Shown: positions 2,845 to 36,269, counted from the stretch's first letter. The stretch is DNA of 64,000 nt from Geosiphon pyriformis uo1 (GCA_016748015.1 JAAOMT010000201.1:504224-568223); one strand, 5' to 3'. Notes: generated by a model not told the origin, from the sequence alone. Made by a program: numbers and translations.

Positions 2845-5800
2845 ATTTATTTGTCGATAGTTAGATTTAACTATATTCTTATTTTATTCTTTTCCATTTA
2901 AATGAAATTATGATTGATACCATTTACGATTCTTAAAGAAAATATGAAAAGCTTATAAACTAATTTCAATCTTTAATTACTCAGCCAAGCTAAAATCTGT
3001 TACCAAAATTGTCTGAGATTTTAGAAAATAGAATTTTTTTTCTATTAAGAGTAAATAGAAATTTTTTATATTTTCTCTAATTTAATATAGAATATAATCA
3101 TGTTCTTTAAATTGTTGTTTTCGACCTAAAAAGTCAATAAAGAAAAAATTGAAGCTTGCTAAAAAATGGGGTAATAAAAATTATTTTAAATTAAACGTTG
3201 AACCTTAAAATTTTTTATTTTGCAATATTTATTGTTATCGAAAGATAAAACATTAAATTAAAGAAAAATAAAACTTTTATTTTATTTTAAAAAAATAACT
3301 TTCAAATATTTTTTCAATCAATGAAAGTATAAGAATGAAAGTTTAATATTTGATTTTAAAACAAAAGAGATATTATAATATTGCTATATATATATATTTT
3401 TCTATATTCAACTAATTGGAATCAGTATATATAAAAAAATTCAGAATTAAATTTTAAAATATTGTGACATTATTGAAAACTTGAAACAATCTGTTGATAG
3501 GCAAATTTTTGTTAAAATCATCAATGGAAATATCGTTTCAAGTTTTCTTTGAAATGCCATTTGAGCTTACAAAGTAATTGAAGATTTTGGTTTCAAAGTA
3601 CCATACAAAAATTGTCATATCAGCAACAGTATAAAATGGCCGTTTTCTTTTTAAAAAAATTTATGACTAAAATTGATACTGAAAATAACCTTTTCGGATC
3701 ACGGATAATTCTAAATATTATTATTAGCAATTTTTAAAGGGCATTTTATCAATAAATAGAAGAAAAGTTTAACGTTTTCCAGAAATTGTAGTAATCTCTA
3801 AAATCACGACCATCATAAGCTAATGAAAGTACCAATAATATTTATATTATATAAAAATTTTCGTACAAACAAATAGTTAGAAAATTAAAGGCTTGATTAA
3901 ATACATGAATAAGATGTAAAGCAAGAATTTCAATTTTTTTATCATTTAAATAATTTCTTTTAGATCATATTTTATTTGAAAGTGTATCAATGTTGCCTCA
4001 TGAAAAAAATTTTTCTTGTCATTTGGTTTATTATCCTCAGATTTCTAGTATGATAGAAAGTTTCTAATTTTTGTTGATTCGACAAAATATATTATTTATA
4101 ATCAAAAAATTGTGGATCAAGCTTTTAAAAGTTTTCTTTCGAATAAAACTGAATTTTTTATTATTGACCAGGTTCAGAACATAACGAATTTTTGTTTATT
4201 TGGAAAAATGACATTTTGTTTTAAGGGAGGCTCCACAATTTTAATAAACTATTATTCAAATTTTGAATAACAAGATGAATATTCATTTAGAAAATTGTTT
4301 GTGCGAACCTTTAAATTTAATTAAGCATTTTCAAAAAAATTTGAAATTTCATTATACTACGTATAATACTATTTTGAATATCATAATAAAGTGAAAGAAA
4401 TTGTGCCAGTGACAATTAAATTCCAATTGATTCTGCAAGACATATAAAAATTTGATTTTTTCACACACATTGGCTATGAAATCAAATATTTTCCTAAAGA
4501 AACAACAAAAATCCGAATAAATATTTGGTAAATCAAAGGCACACGAGAATACTACAATATTGCTCCTATCCCCTCCTATCAATTAGAACAAATATTATTT
4601 TGAAAGTCAAAATAAATGGCAGATACTTTAAGAACGATATCAATGAAGTTTTTATAACGTTTAAATTTGTTATTTTATTGAAAACTAATCTTCAAAAAGG
4701 CATGAAATTGAAACCACAATATTCCCTGCTTAATAGCCCTTGTTTTTATTGAAGTTGTTGAATTTTAATTAAATATAAAATTCTTTCTCACTTTCATCAT
4801 GATCAAAATGAAACCCAATTTTTTCAAATATTTTTTTTTCATTTTTGTTATTTCCGGTTCAAGAACTTTGCATGTTCAAACAAAGCCTATTTATGAAAAT
4901 TCGGCTAATAACCTTGAACAGAATACCATTCCAGTTAATTATTCTCTTGAGCCAGATACTGAATTTCCAAAAGAATTGGACACTAATAACGGTTGGATCC
5001 TAAACGAATGAACTAACTCGTTCATATTTCATTAATTTGACCATTTTCATATGAAGATTAAAAATTTTGTACACTTTTAGAACCATTAAATTCTTACGAC
5101 AATCAACTTGGGTTCAATGCTGGAATTCCTGATGATGTTGCATTCACACCATCACTATCACTTTTCAACCAACTCGATCAAGAATTCAGTAACACTTTGC
5201 AACCGCAGACTGTATCCGACAATTTGTTAATGCCTTCTATCATGGCTTCCCTCGTTGATGAAGGAAGGGAAAGTCAAGTTTCAAAACAGCCTAAAGATAG
5301 CTCTACATTTACCGTGGAAAATGGAAGCAATGAATTGAACCAAGTCTCTTTTTCGCAAGATAGTTTACCAAATATAGCAGGTAAGGCTCTAAGTTATCTG
5401 ATGAATTTAATTAGAGAATGCAATTTTTAAATACAGTTATCAATTTTGCCGCAACTTTGAAATTTCCTCGATTCAGAAAGCTCTTTTACAGAAAATGAAA
5501 CGGGACCTGTGGCATTGAATTTCGGGGAACTCAAGAAGAATTTGGGTGAATTGTACCACAATTTTAGAAAAGATCGAGATCTATTGAAAAATGATTCAAA
5601 GGAAGTTCGAGATTTAGGAAATTATGCACTCATGGCGAATGCTGCATACTGCAATTCTGGACGTATTCCAATAGAATATCGTAGTAAGATTTTATCAAAA
5701 TCTCATTTGTTTTATTTAAAGGTATTAATCAGATATTTTAAGCTAATTTAATTGATCCATTTCTCAAACCAGTCAATCAAAACTTCAATTATGTAGAGAT

Positions 5801-7215
5801 CGCAGTTATATTTGCTAGCTACCAAAGTTCATACGATAGTTTAATGAAGAACTATGACGAATTCTATGTGCCGTACCCAAAACATCTAGATGAGATAAAA
5901 TTTTTACAATCATTTGGAAAGGATAAAAATATATTGGTCAATTCAGAATTTTATCAGGATTGGTTAACGGTGCAAGAAGGCTTTCTTAAGAAGATTAGCG
6001 AAATGACAGTTGGGAATCCGCTTGCTGTTATTCGATTTATCGGGCATGGTGTCGGTGGAGGTTTGTTCTCAACTTTAAAGTCAGTTAGAAATTTAAACTT
6101 TTATCATTAAAAATGAAATTATTATCCTCTAGTCTACGCAATGTTTGCGTCTTTATCATATCTTGCAAGATATGCTGAAAAGGACATTGCGGTATATACT
6201 TACGGCCAACCACGAATGGGAAACGGTAATTTTCGTACTATAATCGATAAAATCATATACCATAAAAAAGGGAAATATCAAATATTTCGTGGTACTCGAT
6301 CTGATGATCCTGTTGTTCATTGGCCGACTAATTACGAGTCCGATCCCGGTGCGCCAAAATCAAGTAAAGTGAAACCTTATACGTTTCTTCATCATCAAAC
6401 CGAATATTTTTTCGAAGAGGAAACTGCCCGTGTGTATAGGTGTAAAATACCATGGTTCAAAAATGAAAATGAAGTATGTATATTTATCACTTTTGCGTCC
6501 GGGTTTAGATGATTTTATAAAGATAAATATAAATTTCTTGAAATGGTTTTTTTTCTTTCACTTTTAGTCTTGTGCCAACGGGAAAAAACTGGACCCTAAA
6601 GTTGACAAACATAATGGGCCTTATTTTAATGTTACAATGGGCCAATGTGTACCCTATGAAAGTCCTTACGGCATGAAGTCAACTAAATATTTTGCATGAA
6701 TTTATTTATTACTAATTTTATCAGGTTGAGATTTTTTTCAAGACAATAAATTTTATGAAACAAATATTTTAATATTAGCACTAATGAAAATTTTCTCAAT
6801 CCTTTCAGCTTACAAATCACCATCAATTTCTATTGAGAGAAATCATGTTTAACCAAATTAATATTTAAATATTGCGCTAACAAATTCTTCTTCTAAATTT
6901 ACTCTAGTTTTTAGCAATTAAATTTTTTACGAAAAAGTTTATTTGTCATAAAAGAGGTTATAATAATGTCAATTTTACCTTAAACAAATTCTATTTTATT
7001 TTATAGATATATTTCTTTTATCAAATGAAATATTTGGCCATATGTTTATAAAGATTTTAAAAACTTGAAATATTAAATTGTAGGATAATAAATTTAATCT
7101 AAAGTATATATTTATTCTTTCTTCGATCTAGAATCAGTTTAAGGTCACAAATACATTTATTTGCCTATACAATATAAAAATATATAAAAGTTCGGTGTAT
7201 TTGATCAGAATTCAA
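2845..7215 (+). repeat. Segmental duplication unit 1 (lipase-like gene A with flanks)
   Basis: Flanks align with 11555-16100 (direct) and ~25300-29113 (inverted), e.g. ttactcagccaagc...gtctgagattttagaaaatagaa near 2977 and 11561; aaggtcacaaatacattt near 7141 and 16014. Confidence 0.85.
4799..6699 (+). CDS. Secreted class-3 lipase-like protein, copy A (~486 aa), predicted catalytically inactive (GHGVGG)
   Basis: Exons 4799-4991, 5081-5380, 5477-5683, 5773-6060, 6133-6473, 6568-6699; all introns GT-AG and frame-preserving. N-terminal hydrophobic signal, long acidic linker, then Lipase_3 motifs: ANAAYC, FIGHGVGG|VYA, YTYGQPRMGN, DDPVVHWP, LHHQTEY, CANG...DKHNGPYF...GQC. Confidence 0.9.
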
Positions 7216-11554: not shown

Positions 11555-14500
11555 TTTTAATTACTCAGCCAAGCTCGAATTGTTTACCAAAAATGTCTGA
11601 GATTTTAGAAAATAGAAATTTATTATTATTAAGAGTAAATAAAACCTTTTTTTTTGATTTACTCTAATTTAATAAAAGGTAGAATTATCTTCTTTTAAAT
11701 TGTAGCTTTTCGACCTAAAACAAAAATTGCAGCTTGCTAGAAAATGAGCACCAATAAATATTATTTTAAATAAAAATTTGAAATTTTGCAATATCGAAAA
11801 TAAAACATTGCATTGAAGAGAAAAAAATATTTTCTAAAGATTTTATGCATTTGTCAAAGTGAAAAGAAATTTGTATAAATAAATAGCAAACAAGCTATTT
11901 GTCAGATTTAAATTAACTTTCAAAATTTTTTTCAATCAATGAAAGTATAAGAATAAAAGTTTAATATTATAAAAGATATATTATAATATCGTTATATATA
12001 TAAATTTTCTATGATGAATTTAAGAATCTGGTTCCAAAGTGCCATAAAAAATTGTTATATCATGCAACAGAATAATAGAGTCGTTTTCTTTCTATAAAAT
12101 TTGTGGCTAAAATTGATACTGAAAATCACCTTTTCGGATCACGGATAAAAGGAATGAATTCTAAATAATATTATTAGCAAATTTTTATTAGGAATTTTAT
12201 CAATAAATAGAAGAAAAGTGTAGTAATCTCTAGAATCACGTCCATCATGAGCTAATCCTCCTCTCATAGTACATTAATGAAAGTACCTATAATATTTAAA
12301 TTCTTTGATAATTTCCTTACAAACAAAAGGTTTGAAAATTAAAAGCTTGATTTGATACATGAATAAGATGTAAAACTAAAAAGCTTCAATTTTTTTATCA
12401 TTTAAATAATTTCTTTCAGACCATATTTTATTTGAATAAGTATCAATTTTGCCTCATGGAAAGATTTTTTCTTGTCATTTTGTTTATTATTCGTCAGTTT
12501 TTTAGTTTGATATAAGGTTTCTAATTTTTGTTGATTCGACAAAATATATTATTATAACCAAAAAATTGTGGAACAAGCTTTTAAAATTTTTCTTTCGAAT
12601 AAAATTTTTTTTTTCATTATTGCATTGAGAACATATCGAATTTTTGTTTATTTAGAAAAAATAAAATATTCTTTTAAGAAGGACTCCACAATTTTATCTG
12701 AAGTTTTATTTGAATTTTTGAAGAACAAGAGGAAAATTTTTTTACAAAATTGCTTATGCGAACCTTGAAATTCAATTAAATTTTTTTAGAGCTTATCTAA
12801 TTCCGAAAATTTTTTTACCAGGTTGTCGCATTATTTTTATAGTTTAATTAAGTGAATGAAATTGTGCGAGCGACGATTCAATTCCTATAATTTGGCAAGA
12901 CATAAAAACTTGATTTTTTCACACACATATCGGCTAGAAAATCCTAAAGAATCAACAAAAATTCGCATATTTTTTAGTAGATCAATCAATTTAGAACAAA
13001 TATTATTGTGAAATGTCAATATAAATGGCAGGAACTATAAGAACGATATGAATGAAGTTTTTATAACGTTTGAGTTGGTTATTTTCTTGAAAACTAATCT
13101 TGGAATCTCATATCTCATCTTCAAAAATGACATGATATAATTTATATTTGAGACCTAAAAATTCCCCTCTTATTTTAATTGAAGTTGTTGTATCTTAATT
13201 AAATATAAAATTCTTTCTCGCTTTCATCATGATCAAAATGAAACCCAATTTTTTTAAATATTTTTTTTTCATTTTTGTTATTTCCGGTTCAAGAACTTTG
13301 CATGTTCAAACAAAGCCTATTTATGAAAATTCGGCTAATAGCCTTGAACAGAATACCATTCCAGTTAATTATTCTCTTGAGCCAGATACTGAATTTCCAA
13401 AAGAATTGGACACTAATAACGGTTGGATCCTAAACGAATGAACTAACTCGTTCATATTTCATTAATTTGACCATTTTCATATGAAGATTAAAAATTTTGT
13501 ACACTTTTAGAACCATTAAATTTTTACGATAATCAACTTGGGTTCAATGCTGCAATTCCTGATGATGTTGCATTCACACCATCACTATCACTTTTCAACC
13601 AACTCGATCAAGAATTCAGTAACACTTTGCAACCGCAGACTGTATCCGACAATTTGTTAATGCCTTCTATCATGGCTTCCCTCGTTGATGAAGGAAGGGA
13701 AAGTCAAGTTTCAAAACAGCCTAAAGATAGCTCTACATTTACCGTGGAAAATGGAAGCAATGAATTGAACCAAGTCTCTTTTTCGCAAGATAGTTTACCA
13801 AATATAGCAGGTAAGGTTCTAAGTTATCTGATGAATTTAATTAGAGAATGCAATTTTTAAATACAGTCATCAATTTTGCCTCAACTTGAAATTTCCTCAA
13901 TTCAGAAAGCTCTTTTACAAAAAATGAAATGGGACCTGTGGCATTGAATTTCGGGGAACTCAAGAAGAATTTAGGTGAATTGTACCACAATTTTAGAAAA
14001 GATCGAGATCTATTGAAAAATGATCTATATTTAGGAAATTATGCACTCATGGCGAATGCTGCATACTGCAATTCGGGACGTATTCCAATAGAATATCGTA
14101 GTAAGATTTTATCAAAATCTCATTTGTTTTATTTAAAGGTATTAATCAGATATTTTAAGCTAATTTAATTGATCCATTTCTCAAACCAGTCAATCAAAAC
14201 TTCAATTATATAGAGATCGCAGTTATATTTGTCAGTAACCAGAAGTCATACAATAATTTAGTGAAGAACTATGTGGAATTCACTCATATGTCGTACCCCA
14301 AACCTCCAAATGAGGTGAAATATTTCCAATCATTGGAAGAAAATGTATTGGTCCATGCAGAATTTTATCGGGATTGGTTAACGGTGCAAGAAGGCTTTCT
14401 TAAGAAGATTAGAGAAATGACAGTTGGGAATCCGCTTGCTGTTATTCGATTTATCGGGCATGGTGTCGGTGGAGGTTTGTTCTCAACTTTAAAGTCAGTA

Positions 14501-16100
14501 AGAAATTTAAACTTTTATCATTAAAAATGAAATTATTATCTCCTAGTCTACGCAATTTTTGCATCTTTATCATATCTTGCAAGATATCCTAAAAAGTACA
14601 TTGTGGTATATACTTATGGCCAACCACGAATGGGAAACGAAAATTTTCGTGCTATTATCCATAAAATCATTTACTTGAAAAAAGGGGCATATCAAATATT
14701 TCGTGTTACTCGATCTGATGATCCTGTTGTCCATTGGCCGACTAATTACGAGTCGGATCCCGGTGCGCCAAAACCAAGTAAAGACGTTGCGGTAAAACCG
14801 TATACGTTTGTTCATCATCAAGCCGAATATTTTTTCGAAGAGGAAACTAACAATGTGTATTTTTGCAAAATACCATGGTTTAAAAGTGAAAATAAAGTAT
14901 GTATATTTATCACTTTTGCACGTGGTTTAGGTGATATCATAAATATAAATTTCTTGAAATGGTTTTTTTCTTTTACTTTAGTCTTGTGCCAACGGGAAAA
15001 AACTGGACCCCAAAGTTGATAAACATAATGGGCCTTACTTCAATGTTACGATGGGCCAATGTGTACCTTATAAAAGTCCTTACGGCATGAAGTCAACTAA
15101 ATATTTTTCATGAATTTATTTATTCAGGTGGAGATTTTCTAATATTAGCACCAATGGAAAATTTTCTAAATCTTTTCAGCTTACAAATCACCATCAATTT
15201 CCATGGAGAAAAAGCATGCCTAAATAAAATCAATATTTAAATATTGCACTACTAAAATATTTTTCTAACTTTACTCTAGTTTTTAAGCAATTAATTTTTT
15301 TCCAGTTTTAATCAAATATTTCGTGATTTTAATAATAATGGTCATATACGCATAAAAAATGATATTCATCACAAAATTTTGCAATTTATCTTTTGACCTG
15401 AAAATATATGATAAATACGAATAGAAAATTTATAAATAAAGTAATATCATGTATGTCTTGAATGAATTTATAAGTTCTATAGTTTGAAGCAATTTTATGT
15501 TGAGAAGCTGAAGATAGTCTTTAGAGATGGAAAATGAGTCTTGCCAGTCATTCTAGTTATTTAAACTAAGAACCGTGAGATATTAGGATTTCAAAATATT
15601 TTGTTCGAACTCGATTCCGATTTTCCCATGTCACTCTATTTATATGTGGAAGATTTGAGATTACTCTAGGCTCTCAAAATCACTATATGAAAGAATCCCT
15701 TTTAAAGATATAAGAGTTATCTTTAAGCAACATTGTGAAAATAATATTTCATTTTGCTAGCTCAGTATTATAAAAAACATGAGAACCATTTTGAAAAATT
15801 TATAATATAAATAAAATCTTTGACATATCATTTTATGAAAAGTCTATGTCCTATAGCAGAGGTTATAATAATGGTCAATTCTTAATTTGAATAAGTGTCA
15901 TTTGGTTTCATAGATACATTTCCTTTATCAAATGTATATTTGGCTATTATTTGAAATATGATTACAAAAATTTAATGATATTTTAAATCAGTCAAATATA
16001 AATACTATAAGTTAAGGTCACAAATACATTTTTTTGCCTATACAATCTGAAAAAATATTAAAAATATATAACAGTTCGGTGTATTTGACCAAAATTCAAT
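11555..16100 (+). repeat. Segmental duplication unit 2 (lipase-like gene B with flanks)
   Basis: Direct copy of unit 1 at an offset of 8430 bp in the 5' gene part; homology starts right at the edge of the transposase relic. Confidence 0.85.
13229..15113 (+). CDS. Secreted class-3 lipase-like protein, copy B (~484 aa), predicted catalytically inactive (GHGVGG)
   Basis: Exons 13229-13421, 13511-13810, 13906-14100, 14190-14474, 14547-14896, 14982-15113; same intron phases as copy A, open frame to TGA at 15111-15113. Confidence 0.9.
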
Positions 16101-23400: not shown

Positions 23401-25831
23401 AAGTAATTAATTAGAAATATCTAAGTTTACTTAAACATTGAAAAACAATTAGCTCACTGGTTGAATTATTTCAGTTTGATGAATTCCACAGTAGAAAAAA
23501 ATAAAATAACAAAGTTAATTGAAATCTATTTTTGTCAATTAATTTTTTCTCTAAAAAAATAGTGGTTTATTCGTGTAATTTCAAAATTCAGTAGCTTTTT
23601 ATTGATACAATTTCTACTTGATAGCTTTTATAAAAATGGTTTTATTAAATTAAATGCTATATCGAACTATACTATCAACATGCTTTTAATTTATTTGAAG
23701 CCAAACTTCTAATGAAATTATTCATGTGTTTTTTAATTAATTAATTGGAAATAAAATGTGAGTTAAGGATTTTTTATTTGATAATAATAATAATAATAAT
23801 AATAATAAAGTGATTTAATGTGAGTTTTTGGAATTTCACGTGATATCAAGTAAATTAACCTTAGGAAACAATCACAAGCCAAATAGTTTAATTGGTAAAA
23901 ATACAAATTTTGCAAAAATTTTAACTTGCGGGTTTGTTAATTAAAAAATTCAACAACGTGACTTTGAAAAATTTTATAAATTTTCATAATAAAACAATAT
24001 ATTTCTTTTAGTTTGAATATAGCTTTTTATAAATCCGACTTGAAATAATATTAGTCTTCTTTTAAATCTATAAAATTACCGATAATGTTAACGGAAAAGA
24101 ATTATGAAAAGAAATTAAATATAATTTATGACACTTTATATTCTGAAACATTTCTAAAATATATTAATAATCAGAAACAAAAATATATGTATCACATTAT
24201 GAAATAGAGACTTGGAGTAGTCAATAAATAAAATAAAATAAACTAAAAAAGATAGAAAAATGGTATTCCCATTCGCAATTCACTTCAATTCAATTCATAA
24301 TTTACTTTAAAAATCTCAAGTCTTTTTCAAAAAAAACCGACTGTAAAATTGAATAAACTTTACTTGAAAGACATTTATTTTACTTTTTTTAAAATTTGAA
24401 TTTTTGGACTATTGTTTTTGCATTTTAAAAACTTGTACAGATACAATATCCAAAAAAAGTTCAATTGTAAATAGCAAAAACTATTTTTACTTTTAAAGAA
24501 TTCTATTAAATAAATAAATATATATATATATACAGGATATAATTTATTAACATTATGCTCGTATCAGAGAGTCTTATGGTACAACCATTTTACTTGTAAT
24601 AACAATATTCAAGTAGCTAATCGAATTTATTATAGTATTATTGGGTTAAAAATTTAAAATAAAATAAGTGGAAAAACTATTGAATTGTAAAATGAGAATT
24701 AATAAAAGTCATGTTTAATTTTGGCAAGTTTTCAATGAAAACAGAATACTTATGGAATTCAATATTAGGATAATGGTATTTTAAATTTTAATTTGATACC
24801 TTTTAAGAGAAATTTCAAAAAATTGCTTATTTATTAAAAATGAATTAATATTACCTGGTTATTCAGATTAACTCAATGAAGCTAGTCAACTGAAAATAGC
24901 CTTTTTTTTAATGTATGATTTAATAGATATTTAGTCATAGAAGATGGATGAATTCAAGTTTTCTTTATGTGCACAATTTCAATTTTATATTGATGAAACT
25001 AAATTTCAATCGTACGTTAATTATCATTATTAAAAAATTAATATACAAGAATTTGCTTGATTATTGGACAAAAATTTGTAAATACGCGAAAATTAATGAC
25101 CATATCTTAATTCTAGCTTTTACTTTTTTTAATAAGCTTCTTGTTATTGTTTATCACAATCAGTCATTAAGTAGCCAGAGTAAGATCCAGCATGATTTTT
25201 AGGATCAAGTGACGATTAATTATTAGTGGAAAGCTGTTTTCAAGTAATGAGAAAGTTGAGGATAGTAAAATTTTTTAAAAAATTAAGTTTATTTCGTTTA
25301 TTTTAATAAAATATCTCACGGTTCCTAGTTTAAATGACTAGAATGACTGGTAAAATTCATTCACCATATCTACAGACTATCTTCAAGTTCTCAAACATAA
25401 AATTATTTCAAACTGTAGAACTTATAAATTTATTAAATCGATACTTGATATTGATTTATATAAAAATTTTATATTCCCTTTTATCATATATTTTGAGCTC
25501 AAGATTTTGTCATTAAGATTCATGTTTATACGTATATGAATATTTTTTTAAAATCACCAAATATTTGATTAAACCAGAAATATATATCAATTGCTTAAAA
25601 ACTAGAATTCCTAAATACATGGAGCTCTTTTATCTCATTTATCTGGATGAATTTGATGAGCAAAGTTAGAAGAATTAATTTGGTAGAGTACCATATTGAT
25701 TTGAATAAAAAAGTCTTTAGAAATAATTTTCTCAATTAAAATTGATGGTAATTTGTAAATTGAAAAGATTCAGAAAAATTTCACTAGTGCTGATATTAAA
25801 ATATTTTGAATAAAATCTCCATCTGATAAAA

Positions 25832-27623
25832 TTAGTTATAAACTGACTTCGTGACATAACAACCTTTGTAAGTTACACATTGGCCCATTGTAGCATTAAA
25901 GTAAGTTCCATTATGTTTGTTAACTTTAGGGAACAGTTTTTTCCTATTGGCACAAAACTAAAAGTAAAAGAGGAAAAATCATTATATTTATCTTTAGGAA
26001 ATCATCTAAACCTGGTGCAAAATTGATAAATATACATACTCCATTTTCATTTTTGAACCATGATTTTTTGCAAAAATACACATTGGTAGTTCCCTCTTCG
26101 AAAAAATATTCGGCTTGATGATGGACAAATGTATACTCAAGTCTGCACCTGGATTTGGCGCGCCAGGATCATCAGCTCGAGTAACACGAAATATTTGAAA
26201 TGTCCTTTTATCATCGTCAAGAATTTGATCGATAATGGCACGAAAATCTTCGTGGTTGGCCGTAAGTATATACAGCAATGTCCTTTTTAGGATATCTTGC
26301 AAAATATGATAAAGATGCAAACATTGCGTAGACTAGAGGATGATAACTTTATTTTTTAATGATAAAAGTTTAAAGTTCTAAGTAAATTTAAACTTTGAGA
26401 ACAAACCTCCACCCAATAAATCGAACATGAGCATACTGATTCGAAGCTGTCATTTCGCCAATCTTCCGAAAAAAGTCCTCTTGCTGCATGGACCAATAAA
26501 CCTTCCCCCCTTCCAAGTTTTTGTAAAAATATTACCTACTCTGGAGGTTTGGGATAGCCCATCTGATCGACTGTATAGTGCTTTATTAAACTATCGTATG
26601 ACCTTTTGTCACTGGCAATTATAACTGCTATCTCTATATCATTTAAGCTTTCATTGACTGGTTTTAGAAATTAATCAATTAAATTAGCCTAGAATATCTG
26701 ATTAATATCTTTAAATCAAATAAATATGATATTAATAAAACTTACTACGATATTCTATTGATATGCGTCCAGAATTGCAGTATGCAGCATTCGCCATGAG
26801 TGGATAATTTCCTAAATCTCGAACTTCCTTTGAATCATTTTTCAATAGAACTCGTTTCTTTTTAAAATTGTCGTACCATACATCCACAGTCTTCTTGAGT
26901 CCCCCAAAATTAAGTGCCACAGGTCCCATCTCATTTTCGGTAAAAGAGTTTTCTGAATCGAGGGAATTTCAAAGTTGTGGCAAAATTGATGACTGTATTC
27001 GAAAATTGCATTCTCTAATTAAATTTATCAGATAACTTAGAACCTTACCTGCTATATTTGGTAAATTATCTTGCGAAAAAGAGACTTGGTTCAATTCATT
27101 GCTTCCATTTTCCACGGTTAATCTATCTTCAAGCTGTGTTAAATCTTGATTTTCCTTTCCTTCATCAACGAGGGAAGCCATGGTAGAAGGCATTAACAAA
27201 TTGTCGGATACAGTCTGCAGTTGCAAAGTGTTACTGAATTCTTGATTGAGTTGGTTGAAAAGTGATAGTGATGGTGTGAATGCAACATCATCAGGAATTG
27301 CAGCATTGAACCCAAGTTGATTGTCGTAAGATTTAATAGTTCTGAAAGTGTACGAGTTTTTTAATCTTCACATGAAAATGCTTAAATTAATGAAATATGA
27401 AAGAGTTAGTTCATTCGTTTATGATCCAACCGTTATCAGTGTCCAATTCTTTTGGAAATTCAGTATCTGGCCCAAAAAAATAATTAACTGGAATAGCATT
27501 TTGTTCAAGATCATTAGCCAAATCTTCATAAATAGGCTTTGTTTGAACGTGCAAATTTCTTGAACTGGAAATAATAAAAATGAAAAAAAAATATTTGAAA
27601 AAATTGGGTTTCATTTTGATCAT
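25832..27623 (-). pseudogene. Inverted class-3 lipase-like pseudogene, copy C
   Basis: Same exon layout as A/B on the minus strand, but has an in-frame TAG in exon 4, an 11-nt deletion removing HGV of the elbow (~26412), a 36-nt deletion in DDPVVHWP (~26165) and further frameshifting deletions. Confidence 0.88.
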
Positions 27624-30600
27624 GATGAAAGTGATAAAGAATTTTTCTATTTAATTGAGATACAACAGCTTCAATAAAAATAAGAGTTACTATTAAGAGG
27701 GGAATTTTTTGGTCTCAAATATAAATTATTTCATGACGTTTTCGAAGATGAGATATGGAGATTCCAATATTAGTTTTCAATACAATAGAAAATTTAAACG
27801 TTCAACCATTTATAATTATTTTTGCTGACATTTCAGAATAATATTTTTTCTAATTGATAGTTAGGAGAAAAATTAATCGAAATAATCTTTGATCTATCAA
27901 ATATTCATCCGAATTTTTTTTGTTGATTGTTTAGGATTTCCTAGTCTACTTCATGCAGAATCAATCGGAATTTAATGGGCTACTGGCACAATCTCTTCAC
28001 ATAATTAGTATATCAAAAAAATTGAATAAAAATTGTGGAGCCTTTCTTAAAAGAAAATATTATAGATACTTTCATTAGTGCAACATTAGAGGATTGGCTC
28101 ATGATGGACATGTATTTAGAAATTGCTACTCGGGAAAAAGTTGCTATTTATTTGACAAAACACCCTATGGAAATTTGTTAATAATATATATTTAGGGATC
28201 CATTCTTTTTATCCGTGATCCGAAAAAGGTGATCTTCAGTAATTTAAATGCATCAATCTTAACCACAACTATATTAAGTTGTTGCATAATATGATAATTT
28301 TCAATGATATTTTAAATTACCTATTAAGTCAAAATGGCATTGCAAAGAAAATTTGAAACAATATTTCCATTGATATTTTCAACAAAGATTTACTTATCAG
28401 CAGATTGGGTCAAATATTGAAAGATATCAAAATATATAAGTTCAATTAATATAAAAGTAATTTTTATAATTAATATACATCTTTTTTAAATTTACTGATT
28501 CTAATTAGTTGATTATAGAAAATAAATATGATATAAACGATTTTATAATATTTCATTTATATTAATATAAGATAATAAAATTTTATTTTATATTGTTATT
28601 GATCGAAAAAAATTTTGAAAACTTATTCTATTACAGAAAAATTATTAGTCTTTTCATTTCAATATTGCAAACATTTCGAACTCGCCTGGTTGAATAAGAA
28701 TAATAAGATACAAATTGAATTAAAATAATTTTTGATCAAGGTTTATTGGTTCTCATTTTTTTTTTAGCATGCTGCATATTTTTATTTATTACCTTTTTAT
28801 GTCGAAAAACCATATGCCTAAAGAAGATAATTACACTTTATATTAAATTGGAGAAAATATAAAAATCTCTTCTATTTACTCTTTAATAGAAAAAAAAATT
28901 CTAATTTCTAAAACTTCAAACATGTTTGGTAACAAATTCGAGTAATTAAAGATTGAAATCAGTTTATAAACTCATTATATTTTTCTTTAGGCGTACATGC
29001 TATCGTTCGGCAAATGGCAAATCATTAAAATAGCTATCAATCATAATTTTATTTAAATGGAAAAAAGATACAATGGGAAAATAGTTAAAACCTTAACTAT
29101 CGACAGATAAATTTCCACAAAGTAATACGAGAGATAAATAAAATCGCCATCATTCTTATTATTGTGAAAAAGTCATTTTCTTAATAGCGGTAAATAAATT
29201 CTTCCAATTCCGGGAATTAGAAAAGATCTTTGGACTGTTGATAAAGCTGAACATCCCGAGCAAGTTAATTCATTGGTACGTATGAAACAATAATACGTAA
29301 TAAAAATTGTACCACCAGAAAATGGAATTTCGTACTTTGCTGCACAACTTTTTTAAGCCTTGAAAAGAGCACAAATATATGTACATGTAAATATGAGATT
29401 GTTTCCAAAATTGGAGTCTCATTCGGAAATGCTTTTAAGAATAAAGTCAAAATCTCGGATAGGTTATTAATGAAATCAGCATTGAATATTGGGTAACGAA
29501 AACTTAGTCGATCTCTTTGGATGTTTGAAATCATCGTTTAAACTAATTTTGTTTCTCGATTGAAAAAGCTTAAATATTTAATGGATTAAAGAATTGGGTA
29601 TATATATTTCTCTCCTTGACTGGTTATTTTCATTGGTTTATTAATTATTTATTAAACGAAACTCAAGGAATATAACTTTGATTTTCATGTAATCGTTTAA
29701 AACTTTGCAAGATTAAAATTTTAACATTTGCCATAACAGTATAATTATACAGTAAGAAAAAACAATATTTATCCAAAAAAAAAACAATTATTATTATTAT
29801 TAAAAAAACACCTTAATTAGTAAAATTAAACTCTAAAAGTTTTCGAAAATCAACCTTTACATGAATCTTCTCTTTAATTTTTTATATATAAAACTTGGGA
29901 ATTTGAAACCAAAATGAAAATGGATTATTAATTTTTTTCATCAACTTGATACAATATTATGTAAACAATATTACCCTTATCAGAATTTCAAAGAGAAACT
30001 CAAAAATTAAACAAGACACAAGATCGAAGATTTGATATTTAACAGAAGTTTAGAAGATATATATATGTATAAATTGAATTCCGGAAGTTTTAAAAAAAAT
30101 CATAGATTACGGAGTATACAAATGAATTTGATAAATTTGAAACATGGTCGTACATTGATTTAATAAATAATCAAAAGCAGTATTCTTTCTTAGCAAGAAA
30201 GAAGAGAAAATTTTAGTAAATTAGAATTAATTTTTTTTTTGCCAAACGATAAAAAGTTTTTGCATTAAATATTAATCTTGCCTTCTTTTTTATAGAAATT
30301 TTATATTTTCATATTTCTCAAATAGAATACCGCAGTCATGTATTGGATTTTTCGAACTTTTTATATTTGAAAATTTATGTGACGAAATGAAGTAAAGTTT
30401 GCTTCTTAAAAAAAGTTTTAAAAACTCGATTGTCGTAATAGAATTTGTAATTTAAATATTCTATTTAACCACTCGATAAACTGTATATCATTGTTTTTAA
30501 GAGACTGTCCAATATTTGGATAGTTCTAGAATTAAATAATTATATGAAAAATCAATGATGCTTACATATTTTAAATCCTTTATTATTATTATTATTATTA

Positions 30601-32637: not shown

Positions 32638-33794
32638 CTAGTTAAACATACAATTCCTTGTAAATACTAATTAAAATTAATATTAGAATTAAATATTTTT
32701 CGACATTCGTAATTGGGAATACCTTTTAAGATTTAAAGTTACATATTTGATTAAAATTTTCAGGTTTATTCAAAATAAGAATCAAGAATAATGATCAATT
32801 TTGACTAAAAATTCATCAATATTATTTAAACTTTCATTATTCCAATTTGGCCAATACGCTAATAGTATAAAAACTGGGCTAGTGGGTGAACTAGTTTTTT
32901 TTTAGACATTTGATAATATTTGAACTTTAAACATTTCAAAACATTCAATAATAATAAGTTACAAATTAAATGAACATCCTGTAAAAATAATTTATTTAAA
33001 CATTTTATTTTATCAAAATTTGGTTTAGGATTCTTTATTAAATATGGCTTTTTAGCAAAATAATTTCAAAAGAAAATTTTTACATTCATGAATAAAATTT
33101 TGAATTTTAATTAAATTGATAAAAAAAGATCTTGAGATGGTTTTTGAAAAAGGGTATAAACTTTATTTTTTTAATCAATATTTCCATTCAGTATGATAAA
33201 TTATATGATTTTTTTGACATGAGTTGAAAATCATGTGAGAATTGCAATGTCAGGATCTTGTTTCAAAACTGTAATTAACTGGCATTAAACTTAATAAATT
33301 TTTATAAAAGCCGGAAAAATATTCTCGAAATGTGTGACTTGTATTCCAAGTTGTGGTTGTTTCACAAAGATAAGAAGGTAATTAATTTAAGGATTTGCAA
33401 CCTGACTGTAAAAAATTTTATTTATATTTTTATTATAATTATTCTTAAATTATAAACATCTTTTCGGTGATCAGGTAAATATTTTTTATTTAAAAAAGCG
33501 ACTCTATATTCCAAAACATCGCTTAAAAAACTATGAAATTCATCGAGTTTTAAAATAGTTGAAATCAATTATTATTGAATGAGTCTCTGGATAAAATAAT
33601 TGTAATTTTTAAATTTTATTTTGATTTTCTAGATGTTTATAAATAATTTTAAAATTTGTTACTTACTTGCAAGAAAATTTGCCCGATCTTTTTTGTGTGT
33701 TGATTCAAATTTTCACTACATTTATCCGAAATTAATCAGGATCTTTGGCATTTATATCATTCCCCTTAATCTGACAGCATTTACCGTCATTAGA

Positions 33795-35212
33795 ATGTTG
33801 AAATATTTTATCCATAATAAAAAATCTTTTAGAACACAAGAAATCCATTCCATTCTCTTTCTTTTATTGATATTAGCGATCCCTTTTTTATTTTTTCTAG
33901 TTATCAAAAATGTAAATAAATCTCAAGATATAGATAAAACAAAAAAATTTGTAAAATTCTTTCTTAACTATTCAAACTTGCTATCTCCTGAAGGGCCTAT
34001 AAAGAAAGATAATAATTATTCTCTAAGGGCGGCAAAACGATCTAATGCCAAAAGAAAAACTCCTAACAAGCGATTATTTGAAAAAAAATGGATTGAACGT
34101 CTGCACTTTGATGTTATAGCTCAATATGCAAACAAGCCTTATTGTGTTGATAGTGCGAAATTCGCAGTCGATTTACCTGAAATAAGTGGCAAATAAATTT
34201 AACAGTGAATAAAATATTTCTTCCAAAAACCATTTAAAGTAATCGCTATGTTACTTATATATCTTTCTAGGGAATATTGAAAAAGGACCATCAATATTTG
34301 ATTTCTTTCACATTGTTGGTTACTTTCGAGGCAAGCAAATAAAAGATTTGATAAAAAAGATTGAGTTACCTCCTTTTTTATTCACTTTTTTGATTATTTT
34401 AGGACCCGAAATCGGAAGAGAGCAAATGAAAGAACTTTCAGAAGTTGATACCAAAAGATTAACAAAAGGGGTTTGGGAGGTTAATTCTAAATGGGGAAAT
34501 TTTTTAAGACTTACAATTCGTAAGGTTTTCTTTCAACAAATATTGCAGCTCATGAGACAAAAGAAACCTGAGACCCTAAATCATATTAACTTGATAGGGC
34601 ATGGTGTTGGAGGAGGTTAGTAAAACTTTTTGATATCAAAAATCAGAATTTTAGCTCAATTCCATTTTAAATTGAATTTTAGTCTATGCTCAAATCTTGA
34701 GCATCTTATTGGATGATCATTTAAGCAATATTATGCCAGGGTCTACATATCACATCTCGATTTTTACATTTGGGTCACCAAGAGTCGGAAATTCTCAATT
34801 TGCAATGACCATAAATTTGAGTAATAAAATCACTCATTTTAGGTTCACTCACTCAAATGATTTTGCACCCCATTTCCCGGCAACTACTGGAAGAAACTAT
34901 TTACATTCTGAAGGAGAGCATTGGATTGTCCCAAAAAATTGTGATTGCCCATCTGACGAGGATTATACTCTTTATAACTGTCCAGGATATTCTCGTGATG
35001 ATCTAGACTATTACGGAGAAAATTCGGTAGGTTTTTTTATAATTTCGATTGAATTTCTATAAGTATTCAAAATATTTTATTTAAAATTTATTTGCTTATA
35101 TTTCGCTTAAAATACTTTTGAAAGAGATGCAATATTGGCACATTTCGGGCCTTATTTTTCAACTACAATAGGCAAGTGTGATAATTTTTATGATTGGGAG
35201 GTACATGCTTAA
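33795..35212 (+). CDS. Distant class-3 lipase-like paralog D (signal/anchor, GHGVGG), possibly frameshifted in the last exon
   Basis: Likely ATG 33795; exons ~33795-34185, 34271-34330, 34403-34615, 34683-35026, 35125-35212. Motifs AQYANKPYC, YFRG|P, LIGHGVGG|VYA, FTFGSPRVGN, NDFAPHFP, YLHSEGEHW. CNIG and AHFGPYF...GKC are in different frames. Confidence 0.75.
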
Positions 35213-36269
35213 AATATACATCAAGATTTGGAAGTTTTCGCCACTTGCAAAACCATTTCAATTGAAGATCGGCATTATTTAAATTGGATATGTTATCCAG
35301 AAAATATATACATACTTTTTATAAAAAAGTTCATGTGCCATTAAATATAAACATTTTTCATATTTAAATAATAAATTTACAATCAATTACCTTTTTGAGA
35401 ATATTACTGAATTTATTTTAAGTATATTTTGGAAACTAATTGAAATGATTCGCTAATATTTGTGCCACTTATTAAATTCATAAATCGATTAATTCATATT
35501 TGATCTAAAACTTGTTCACCTTTATTAACTTTCTTAAAATAAATTTAATATTCCAATCAGCTAGATATTTCATATGAATACTTCTAGAGATAGTGTATGC
35601 CTATTTAGATTAACTATGAGTTATGAGTTGAACATATTAAAATAGTATTTAAAATTAAAAAAAAAGAATGGATAGAATTTTCTCTAAAACCTATCAAGAA
35701 TAACAAAACTTGTTAATAAGTTATGGATTAAATGATTAAAACAAAAATTTGATCATTATGGAAAATTAAAAAACGCAACTCATCCTTAAAAAGATTTCTT
35801 AAATTTTTAAGAGCATTAAAAGAAGTTATGGTACAAAACGAGTTTTCAATATGAGGCAGATACTATGATATTTGAATAACTGCAAAGTCTGACAAATTTC
35901 TGGTTGTAATTTTGAGAGTTTCTTGAAATCCAAGAAAAATAAATTTGCTGTTTTTGCTAAAAAAATCACTCATGACATGGAAGCTTTTGCTGGCTGATTT
36001 AAAATTTTAATGGGTGAAAACGATGAAAATTTTTGATTTCCTTTTTGAAAGTTATCTATTATTTTATCACTTAAATATTAAAATAATACAAGTTTGATAT
36101 AAAATACAGGACCCAAACACTTTCTTAATTGTCGCCTTGAGTGTTGTAGTGAATACATTTGGAAATTTTACATTTTATTTTCTAAATTTTATCAAATTTT
36201 ATTTATCCACATTCTCATGATTATTCAGATTTTATACACTCAATGGAAAACCTTAAAATTAAAAGAACT

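Follow-up and report, generated by a model that had tools for sequence, protein, structure and literature searches.

Why does a short part of one exon differ strongly between two tandem genes while the introns on either side of it are near-identical? This question is raised by a stretch of 64,000 nucleotides (nt) from Geosiphon pyriformis uo1 (GCA_016748015.1, JAAOMT010000201.1:504224-568223), the whole of which is referred to here as the window. The window is AT-rich eukaryotic DNA with a G+C content of ~26%, and its encoded proteins match Geosiphon pyriformis. Direct reading of the sequence reveals a six-exon gene that is present twice in tandem (copies A and B), and comparison of the window with itself adds a third, inverted copy C. 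Gene A is laid out as a probable signal peptide, suggested by the appearance of its N-terminus, followed by ~200 amino acids (aa) without family match and a class-3-lipase-like domain.

An original prediction, made from the DNA alone, placed the variable part of exon 4 in the lid of class-3 lipases and attributed its variability to diversifying selection or cassette-like exchange on a ligand-contact surface. This work describes the divergence along the duplication, the placement of the variable segment in the lipase fold and the rates at which it changes. Concerted evolution by patchy gene conversion around the lid patch is the best explanation of the pattern, and probably the correct one.

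A divergent block between near-identical introns

Intron 3 is identical in A and B at 89 of 89 positions, and intron 4 at 69 of 72 (three mismatches). Between these introns lies a divergent block of exon 4 (Table 1), which aligns with 102 matches, 28 mismatches and 9 gap columns (78.5% identity, 21.5% mismatches); exon 4 outside the block is 98% identical. In the encoded protein, 23 residues of the block are replaced, and there are two in-frame indels, one of a single residue and one of two. Differences between A and B cluster far beyond chance: the longest identical run spans 263 columns, whereas none of 2000 shuffles gave a run above 77. The original prediction had reported an identical intron 3, an intron 4 with about three differences and a block with roughly two dozen replacements and two in-frame indels, all of which is confirmed. 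The third variant that it had noted in copy C is also present, within a pseudogene.

Probable gene conversion of the flanking tracts

Along the duplication, divergent columns between A and B amount to 27.1% in the upstream intergenic DNA, 3.0% in 4770-5812, 26.6% in the block (gaps counted), 2.7% in 5949-6135, 12.9% in exons 5-6 with intron 5 and 31.2% in the downstream intergenic DNA. Among the introns, identity is 100% for introns 1 and 3 and 87% for intron 5. The block is therefore at the background divergence of the duplication, and the outliers are the two near-identical tracts that flank it. Identical runs exceed chance, the introns are homogenised like the exons and the unconverted parts sit at the background divergence, as is characteristic of gene conversion. 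It is likely that the contrast between block and introns arises from conversion of the flanks.

The age of the block was estimated from its synonymous (dS) and non-synonymous (dN) divergence, for which codon columns of separate exons were pooled and split codons were dropped. Between A and B, the block has a dS of 0.24 and a dN of 0.26 (5 synonymous and 25 non-synonymous differences), and exons 5-6 have a dS of 0.21 and a dN of 0.078. Outside the block, exon 4 has a dS of 0, and the tracts adjoining the block have one of about 0.02. At the age of the flanks, 0.4-0.8 synonymous differences would be expected in the block, with which the five observed are incompatible (P = 6e-5 to 2e-3). The block is consequently older than its flanks, and we regard it as probably an older unconverted island rather than the product of rapid divergence after a recent duplication.

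The mosaic and the rates are observed directly, and gene conversion is the mechanism that we infer from them. A and B would be old tandem duplicates with a background divergence of about 20-27%. Recent non-allelic gene conversion may then have homogenised both tracts, introns included, while the lid-encoding block between them would have escaped conversion and retained its older divergence. Either two separate conversion events would have skipped the block, or a single patchy event would have broken at its dense mismatches and two indels.

Exon 3 of B carries an in-frame 12-nt deletion within the converted tract (A 5597-5610 versus B 14027-14034; SKEVRD to LY). This deletion is therefore a change since conversion, or the tract itself is composite.

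Comparison with a fourth copy

A fourth, intact copy D, which the original prediction had missed, is located on a different contig (L003, identical to P0002 and G9A89_014172). It shows no recent conversion in its exon 4 part. From D, the block is diverged by 27-30% (0.27-0.30), intron 4 by 24-28% and the rest of exon 4 by 23-24%; the block is no more diverged from D than the neutral intron 4. The changes in the block fall on both lineages, with 9 derived in A, 5 derived in B and 14 ambiguous. Every coding indel that separates A, B and D is a multiple of three in length, so their reading frames are maintained; copy C is full of frameshifts.

Distances to D are themselves mosaic, being ~10% in exons 1-2 and introns 3 and 5, and 22-30% in exons 3-4 and intron 4, a hint that contigs also exchanged sequence by conversion at an earlier time. 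Copy D also terminates 14 codons earlier, owing to a TAA codon.

Placement of the block in the lipase fold

Library searches of the spliced models were run exon by exon, and full-length work was performed on the database records P0024 (A), P0025 (B) and P0002 (D). The Pfam family Lipase_3 (PF01764) matches exon 5 at 32.6 bits (cutoff 22) and is precomputed for all three records. An AlphaFold (AF2) model of P0024:196-486 reached a mean predicted local distance difference test (pLDDT) score of 71.5 and a predicted template modelling (pTM) score of 0.78. Foldseek ranks fungal lipases and feruloyl esterase A (FaeA) as closest to this model in fold (E down to 5e-8), and a profile of 14 family members matches the same proteins with E down to 7e-35. 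Exon 4 alone gave only chance-level matches against solved structures.

In the model, the block covers residues 53-100: a first helix at 56-65 is followed by a short strand with the conserved YP, then by a second helix at 77-84, inserted specifically in this family, and lastly by the strand that precedes the VHxGF-like motif. FaeA residues 68-80, which we take to be the flap from our reading of the literature, fall on the first half of the block in the profile alignment. On the basis of this alignment at the start of the block, its assignment as the lid- or flap-equivalent segment of a class-3 lipase fold, between the FRG and VHxGF strands, is supported by sequence and model. The placement originally proposed thus agrees with the FaeA alignment, the short helix in the AF2 model and the lipase and FaeA fold matches.

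Loss of the catalytic serine

Both sequence and fold place these proteins among the class-3 lipases, but the nucleophile serine of the GxSxG motif is absent. A, B and D have GHGVGG and not GHSxGG at the position that aligns with GHSLG of solved lipases. The aspartate and histidine are conserved by alignment only, RSDDPV being aligned with FaeA HSNDGI and KHNGPYF with DAHTTYF. Right after the FRG-like strand, where FaeA Thr68 aligns, A has Tyr (5817-5819), B has Asn (14235-14237) and D has Glu. Active enzymes are believed to use a Ser or Thr here to help form the oxyanion hole, and given that role the substitutions would be a second sign of lost catalysis. The proteins of A, B and D are probably not hydrolases.

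Selection on the lid segment

The principal alternative to conversion is diversifying selection on a ligand- or partner-contact surface, in which the A and B lids are functionally different and conversions that would erase the difference are purged, leaving the island. The island indeed coincides with the lid-equivalent segment, and the genes belong to a huge, lineage-specific and probably non-catalytic family. The ratio of non-synonymous to synonymous counts is also higher in the block than in exons 5-6 (Fisher p = 0.07), and estimates of omega (dN/dS) are 1.1-2.1 in the block versus 0.32 in the core.

Codon tests on the block cover 46 codons in three intact sequences (A, B, D). The block omega is 1.08 with the Nei-Gojobori method (NG86), 1.46 (p = 0.30) when the mutation spectrum is derived from non-coding, unconverted sequence of the A-B pair, and 1.6 (p = 0.25 versus omega = 1) under the maximum-likelihood (ML) codon model GY94+F1X4 with A, B and D. 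The ML codon model gives 1.6 for the rest of exon 4, 0.76 for exons 1-3 and 0.32 for exons 5-6, where omega = 1 is rejected (p = 1e-6). The C-terminal core is therefore constrained (omega ~0.3), and the N-terminal half and exon 4 are free.

No estimate of dN/dS in the block is significantly above 1 (1.08-2.1; p = 0.08-0.30), and omega = 1 is rejected by no test for this segment. An excess of change specific to the block was not found either, as the rest of exon 4 has an equal omega in the comparison with D and intron 4 is equally diverged from D. The block dN equals, and does not exceed, neutral intron and intergenic divergence. Its dS and dN are similar to each other, to the dS of exons 5-6 and to intergenic divergence. 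The original prediction had itself set such an outcome, 'merely an unconverted tract', against diversifying selection, and its proposal of selection is not upheld here. Comparison of the four copies shows patchy mosaics elsewhere too, in introns and in other exons, and the island therefore requires no selection. Substitutions in the block accumulate at a roughly neutral rate, as do those in the rest of exon 4, and this near-neutral lid may reflect relaxed constraint after loss of catalysis.

Several points nevertheless weigh against conversion as the full account. Conversion is deduced from a pattern in one genome, and the sequence of B comes from the assembly only. An island exactly over the lid could equally be kept by selection against conversion. 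Point estimates of the block omega are above 1 and reach 2.1 (p = 0.08) with GY94 F3X4 on A, B and D, and with so few codons and intact sequences a few positively selected sites are possible.

Taking both sides together, diversifying selection is not demonstrated for the block and appears unlikely as the cause of the island; weak selection on the lid is a minority possibility. It seems distinctly unlikely that the former lid is a specificity-determining binding surface, with selection purging lid-erasing conversions between neighbours and the family serving as a diversified binding or recognition repertoire. If true, such a diversified lid repertoire of secreted lipase-shaped proteins would possibly be tied to the Nostoc endosymbiosis.

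Assembly artefact and cassette exchange

Collapsed or chimerised reads of paralogues could make the flanks look identical, as an AT-rich assembly in 792 contigs is prone to such errors at tandem paralogues and is the sole source of the B sequence. We consider such an artefact very improbable, since a separate public run yields contigs that agree with A at every base (0 mismatches) from exon 2 across the block to exon 5, and since the tracts hold scattered differences and an in-frame 12-nt indel, like real diverging copies.

Import of the A or B block from another paralogue or a silent donor would fit the sharp boundaries on either side of the block, but this cassette-like exchange, the other mechanism originally suggested, is hardly credible and was rejected: a DNA search of the whole 128-Mb genome yielded four copies of the block in total (A-D) and no extra silent or donor copy, these four differ mutually by 21-30%, and A and B remain the closest pair (0.215), with C and D at 0.25-0.30 from each.

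Gene models and spliced contigs

The coordinates of all features are collected in Table 1.

Table 1. Features of copies A, B and C in the window
Feature	Position	Strand	Description
Gene A, G9A89_004587	4799..6699	+	486 aa, six exons; exon translations identical to database protein P0024
Gene A exons	E1 4799-4991, E2 5081-5380, E3 5477-5683, E4 5773-6060, E5 6133-6473, E6 6568-6699	+	
Gene A intron 3	5684..5772	+	89 nt, GT..AG; joint 5683>5773 present in contig
Divergent block in A	5813..5948	+	136 nt; lid helix, YP strand, family-specific helix, strand preceding VHxGF-like motif
Nucleophile-elbow motif G-H-G-V-G-G	6042..6059	+	Gly at 6048-6050 in place of class-3 lipase catalytic Ser
Gene A intron 4	6061..6132	+	72 nt, immediately 3' of GHGVGG codons; contig end at 6060 runs into first exon 5 bases
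Gene A exons 5-6 and intron 5	6136..6699	+	not recently converted, purifying selection; conserved Asp (RSDDPV) and His (DKHNGPYF)
Gene-conversion tract 1, A/B (putative)	4770..5812	+	exons 1-3, introns 1-3, exon 4 start; 3.0% divergent columns
Gene-conversion tract 2, A/B (putative)	5949..6135	+	remainder of exon 4 and intron 4; 2.7% divergent columns, dS 0 in exon 4 part
Gene B, G9A89_004588	13229..15113	+	484 aa, identical to P0025; divergent block at 14231-14359
Copy C, pseudogene, G9A89_004590	25658..27802	-	lesions in block and exons

One public run of uncertain kind has contigs in which A is joined without introns at 5380>5477 and 5683>5773 and whose loose ends are consistent with removal of introns 1 and 4. 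A further contig corresponds to copy D in spliced form. Two in-frame AG acceptors lie 15 nt apart where exon 3 of A begins (5474-5492); the first is the one used in both the contig and the public model, with the exon starting at 5477.

The damage in copy C includes a frameshifted exon 2, a TAG in frame within the block, and deletions of 26 nt and 11 nt, of which the 11-nt one takes out the GHGV codons. Public annotation carries this decayed copy as a 348-aa protein (G9A89_004590, P0026), with its lesions spliced around.

A serine-less family in Geosiphon

A, B and D are members of a family in which GHG replaces GHS. The G-H-G-x-G-G DNA pattern is found at 301 sites in the genome versus 10 in the control, and the G-H-S-x-G-G pattern at 55 versus 16, for an estimate of about 40-55 sites. 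All 20 sampled GHG sites (20/20) lie in a class-3-lipase-like domain, and GHGxGG is present in most paralogues fetched. Relatives in large protein libraries are almost all from Geosiphon, including all but one of those looked up among 23 representative clusters, and searches of the protein libraries returned no orthologue of A, B or D outside Geosiphon. The result is a very large (~300-copy) serine-less lipase-like family that is seen almost only in Geosiphon pyriformis. The replacement of the nucleophile Ser by Gly in A, B and D, together with ~300 such genes in the genome, fits the earlier view that these proteins do not represent a housekeeping enzyme. A literature search on Rhizophagus class-3 lipases, fungal lipase pseudoenzymes and a Geosiphon lipase expansion returned nothing relevant.

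The GHGxGG sites often occur in tandem clusters (e.g. on contigs C378, C371, C376, C419 and C563 of genome G000). A further lipase-like paralogue with GHGVGG is located in the window at 33077-36177 (+), with its motif at about 34597-34615. Its inverted partner, L053 (G000:C541:498100-501200, -), lies 4.5 kb before the start of the window and is 78-86% identical, so that the A-B-C cluster is nested in a larger inverted pair; one partner of this pair appears broken upstream of the motif. Elsewhere, L004 and L005 (G000:C618:73094-78479) are tandem lipase-like copies 2053 bases apart with identical exon-4-like and exon-5-like translations, which points to a very recent duplication or, alternatively, to one made in assembly. 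Neither L004/L005, being identical, nor L053/L054, with its broken partner, was usable as a replicate close pair for comparing omega between lid and core.

Implications

By itself the pattern is ordinary: it is a footprint of concerted evolution and not a marker of a selected recognition surface. A and B form a clean case of a 'variable exon between identical introns' as an artefact of conversion rather than of selection, and their mosaic documents that gene conversion is active within this serine-less, lipase-like Geosiphon family. The rates among A, B and D show which part of the protein is constrained, namely the C-terminal core, and which part is free. The more interesting object is the family itself, with ~300 nucleophile-less copies in a fungus that hosts a cyanobacterium.

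Comparison with known systems

The locus resembles tandem paralogues under concerted evolution by patchy conversion in its long identical runs that span introns and in flanks at background divergence. The tandem and inverted paralogues, one of them a pseudogene, and the distances that are mosaic along the gene add to this likeness; it differs in that the mechanism is deduced here from a single genome.

With fungal class-3 lipases and FaeA (the Rhizomucor, Rhizopus and Thermomyces lipases and Aspergillus niger FaeA), the Geosiphon copies share the fold, the position of the lid or flap after the FRG strand, the conserved Asp and His and the presence of Cys pairs. They differ from these enzymes in having Gly for the nucleophile Ser, Tyr, Asn or Glu at the position of FaeA Thr68, an insertion of ~20 residues that follows the lid and is specific to the family, and a long extension at the N-terminus.

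The plant proteins EDS1, PAD4 and SAG101, which are among the fold and profile matches, use a class-3 lipase-like fold without hydrolysis, as the Geosiphon proteins probably do. The similarity to them is distant, however, as the Geosiphon proteins lack the EP domain, are fungal and probably secreted, and occur in hundreds of copies.

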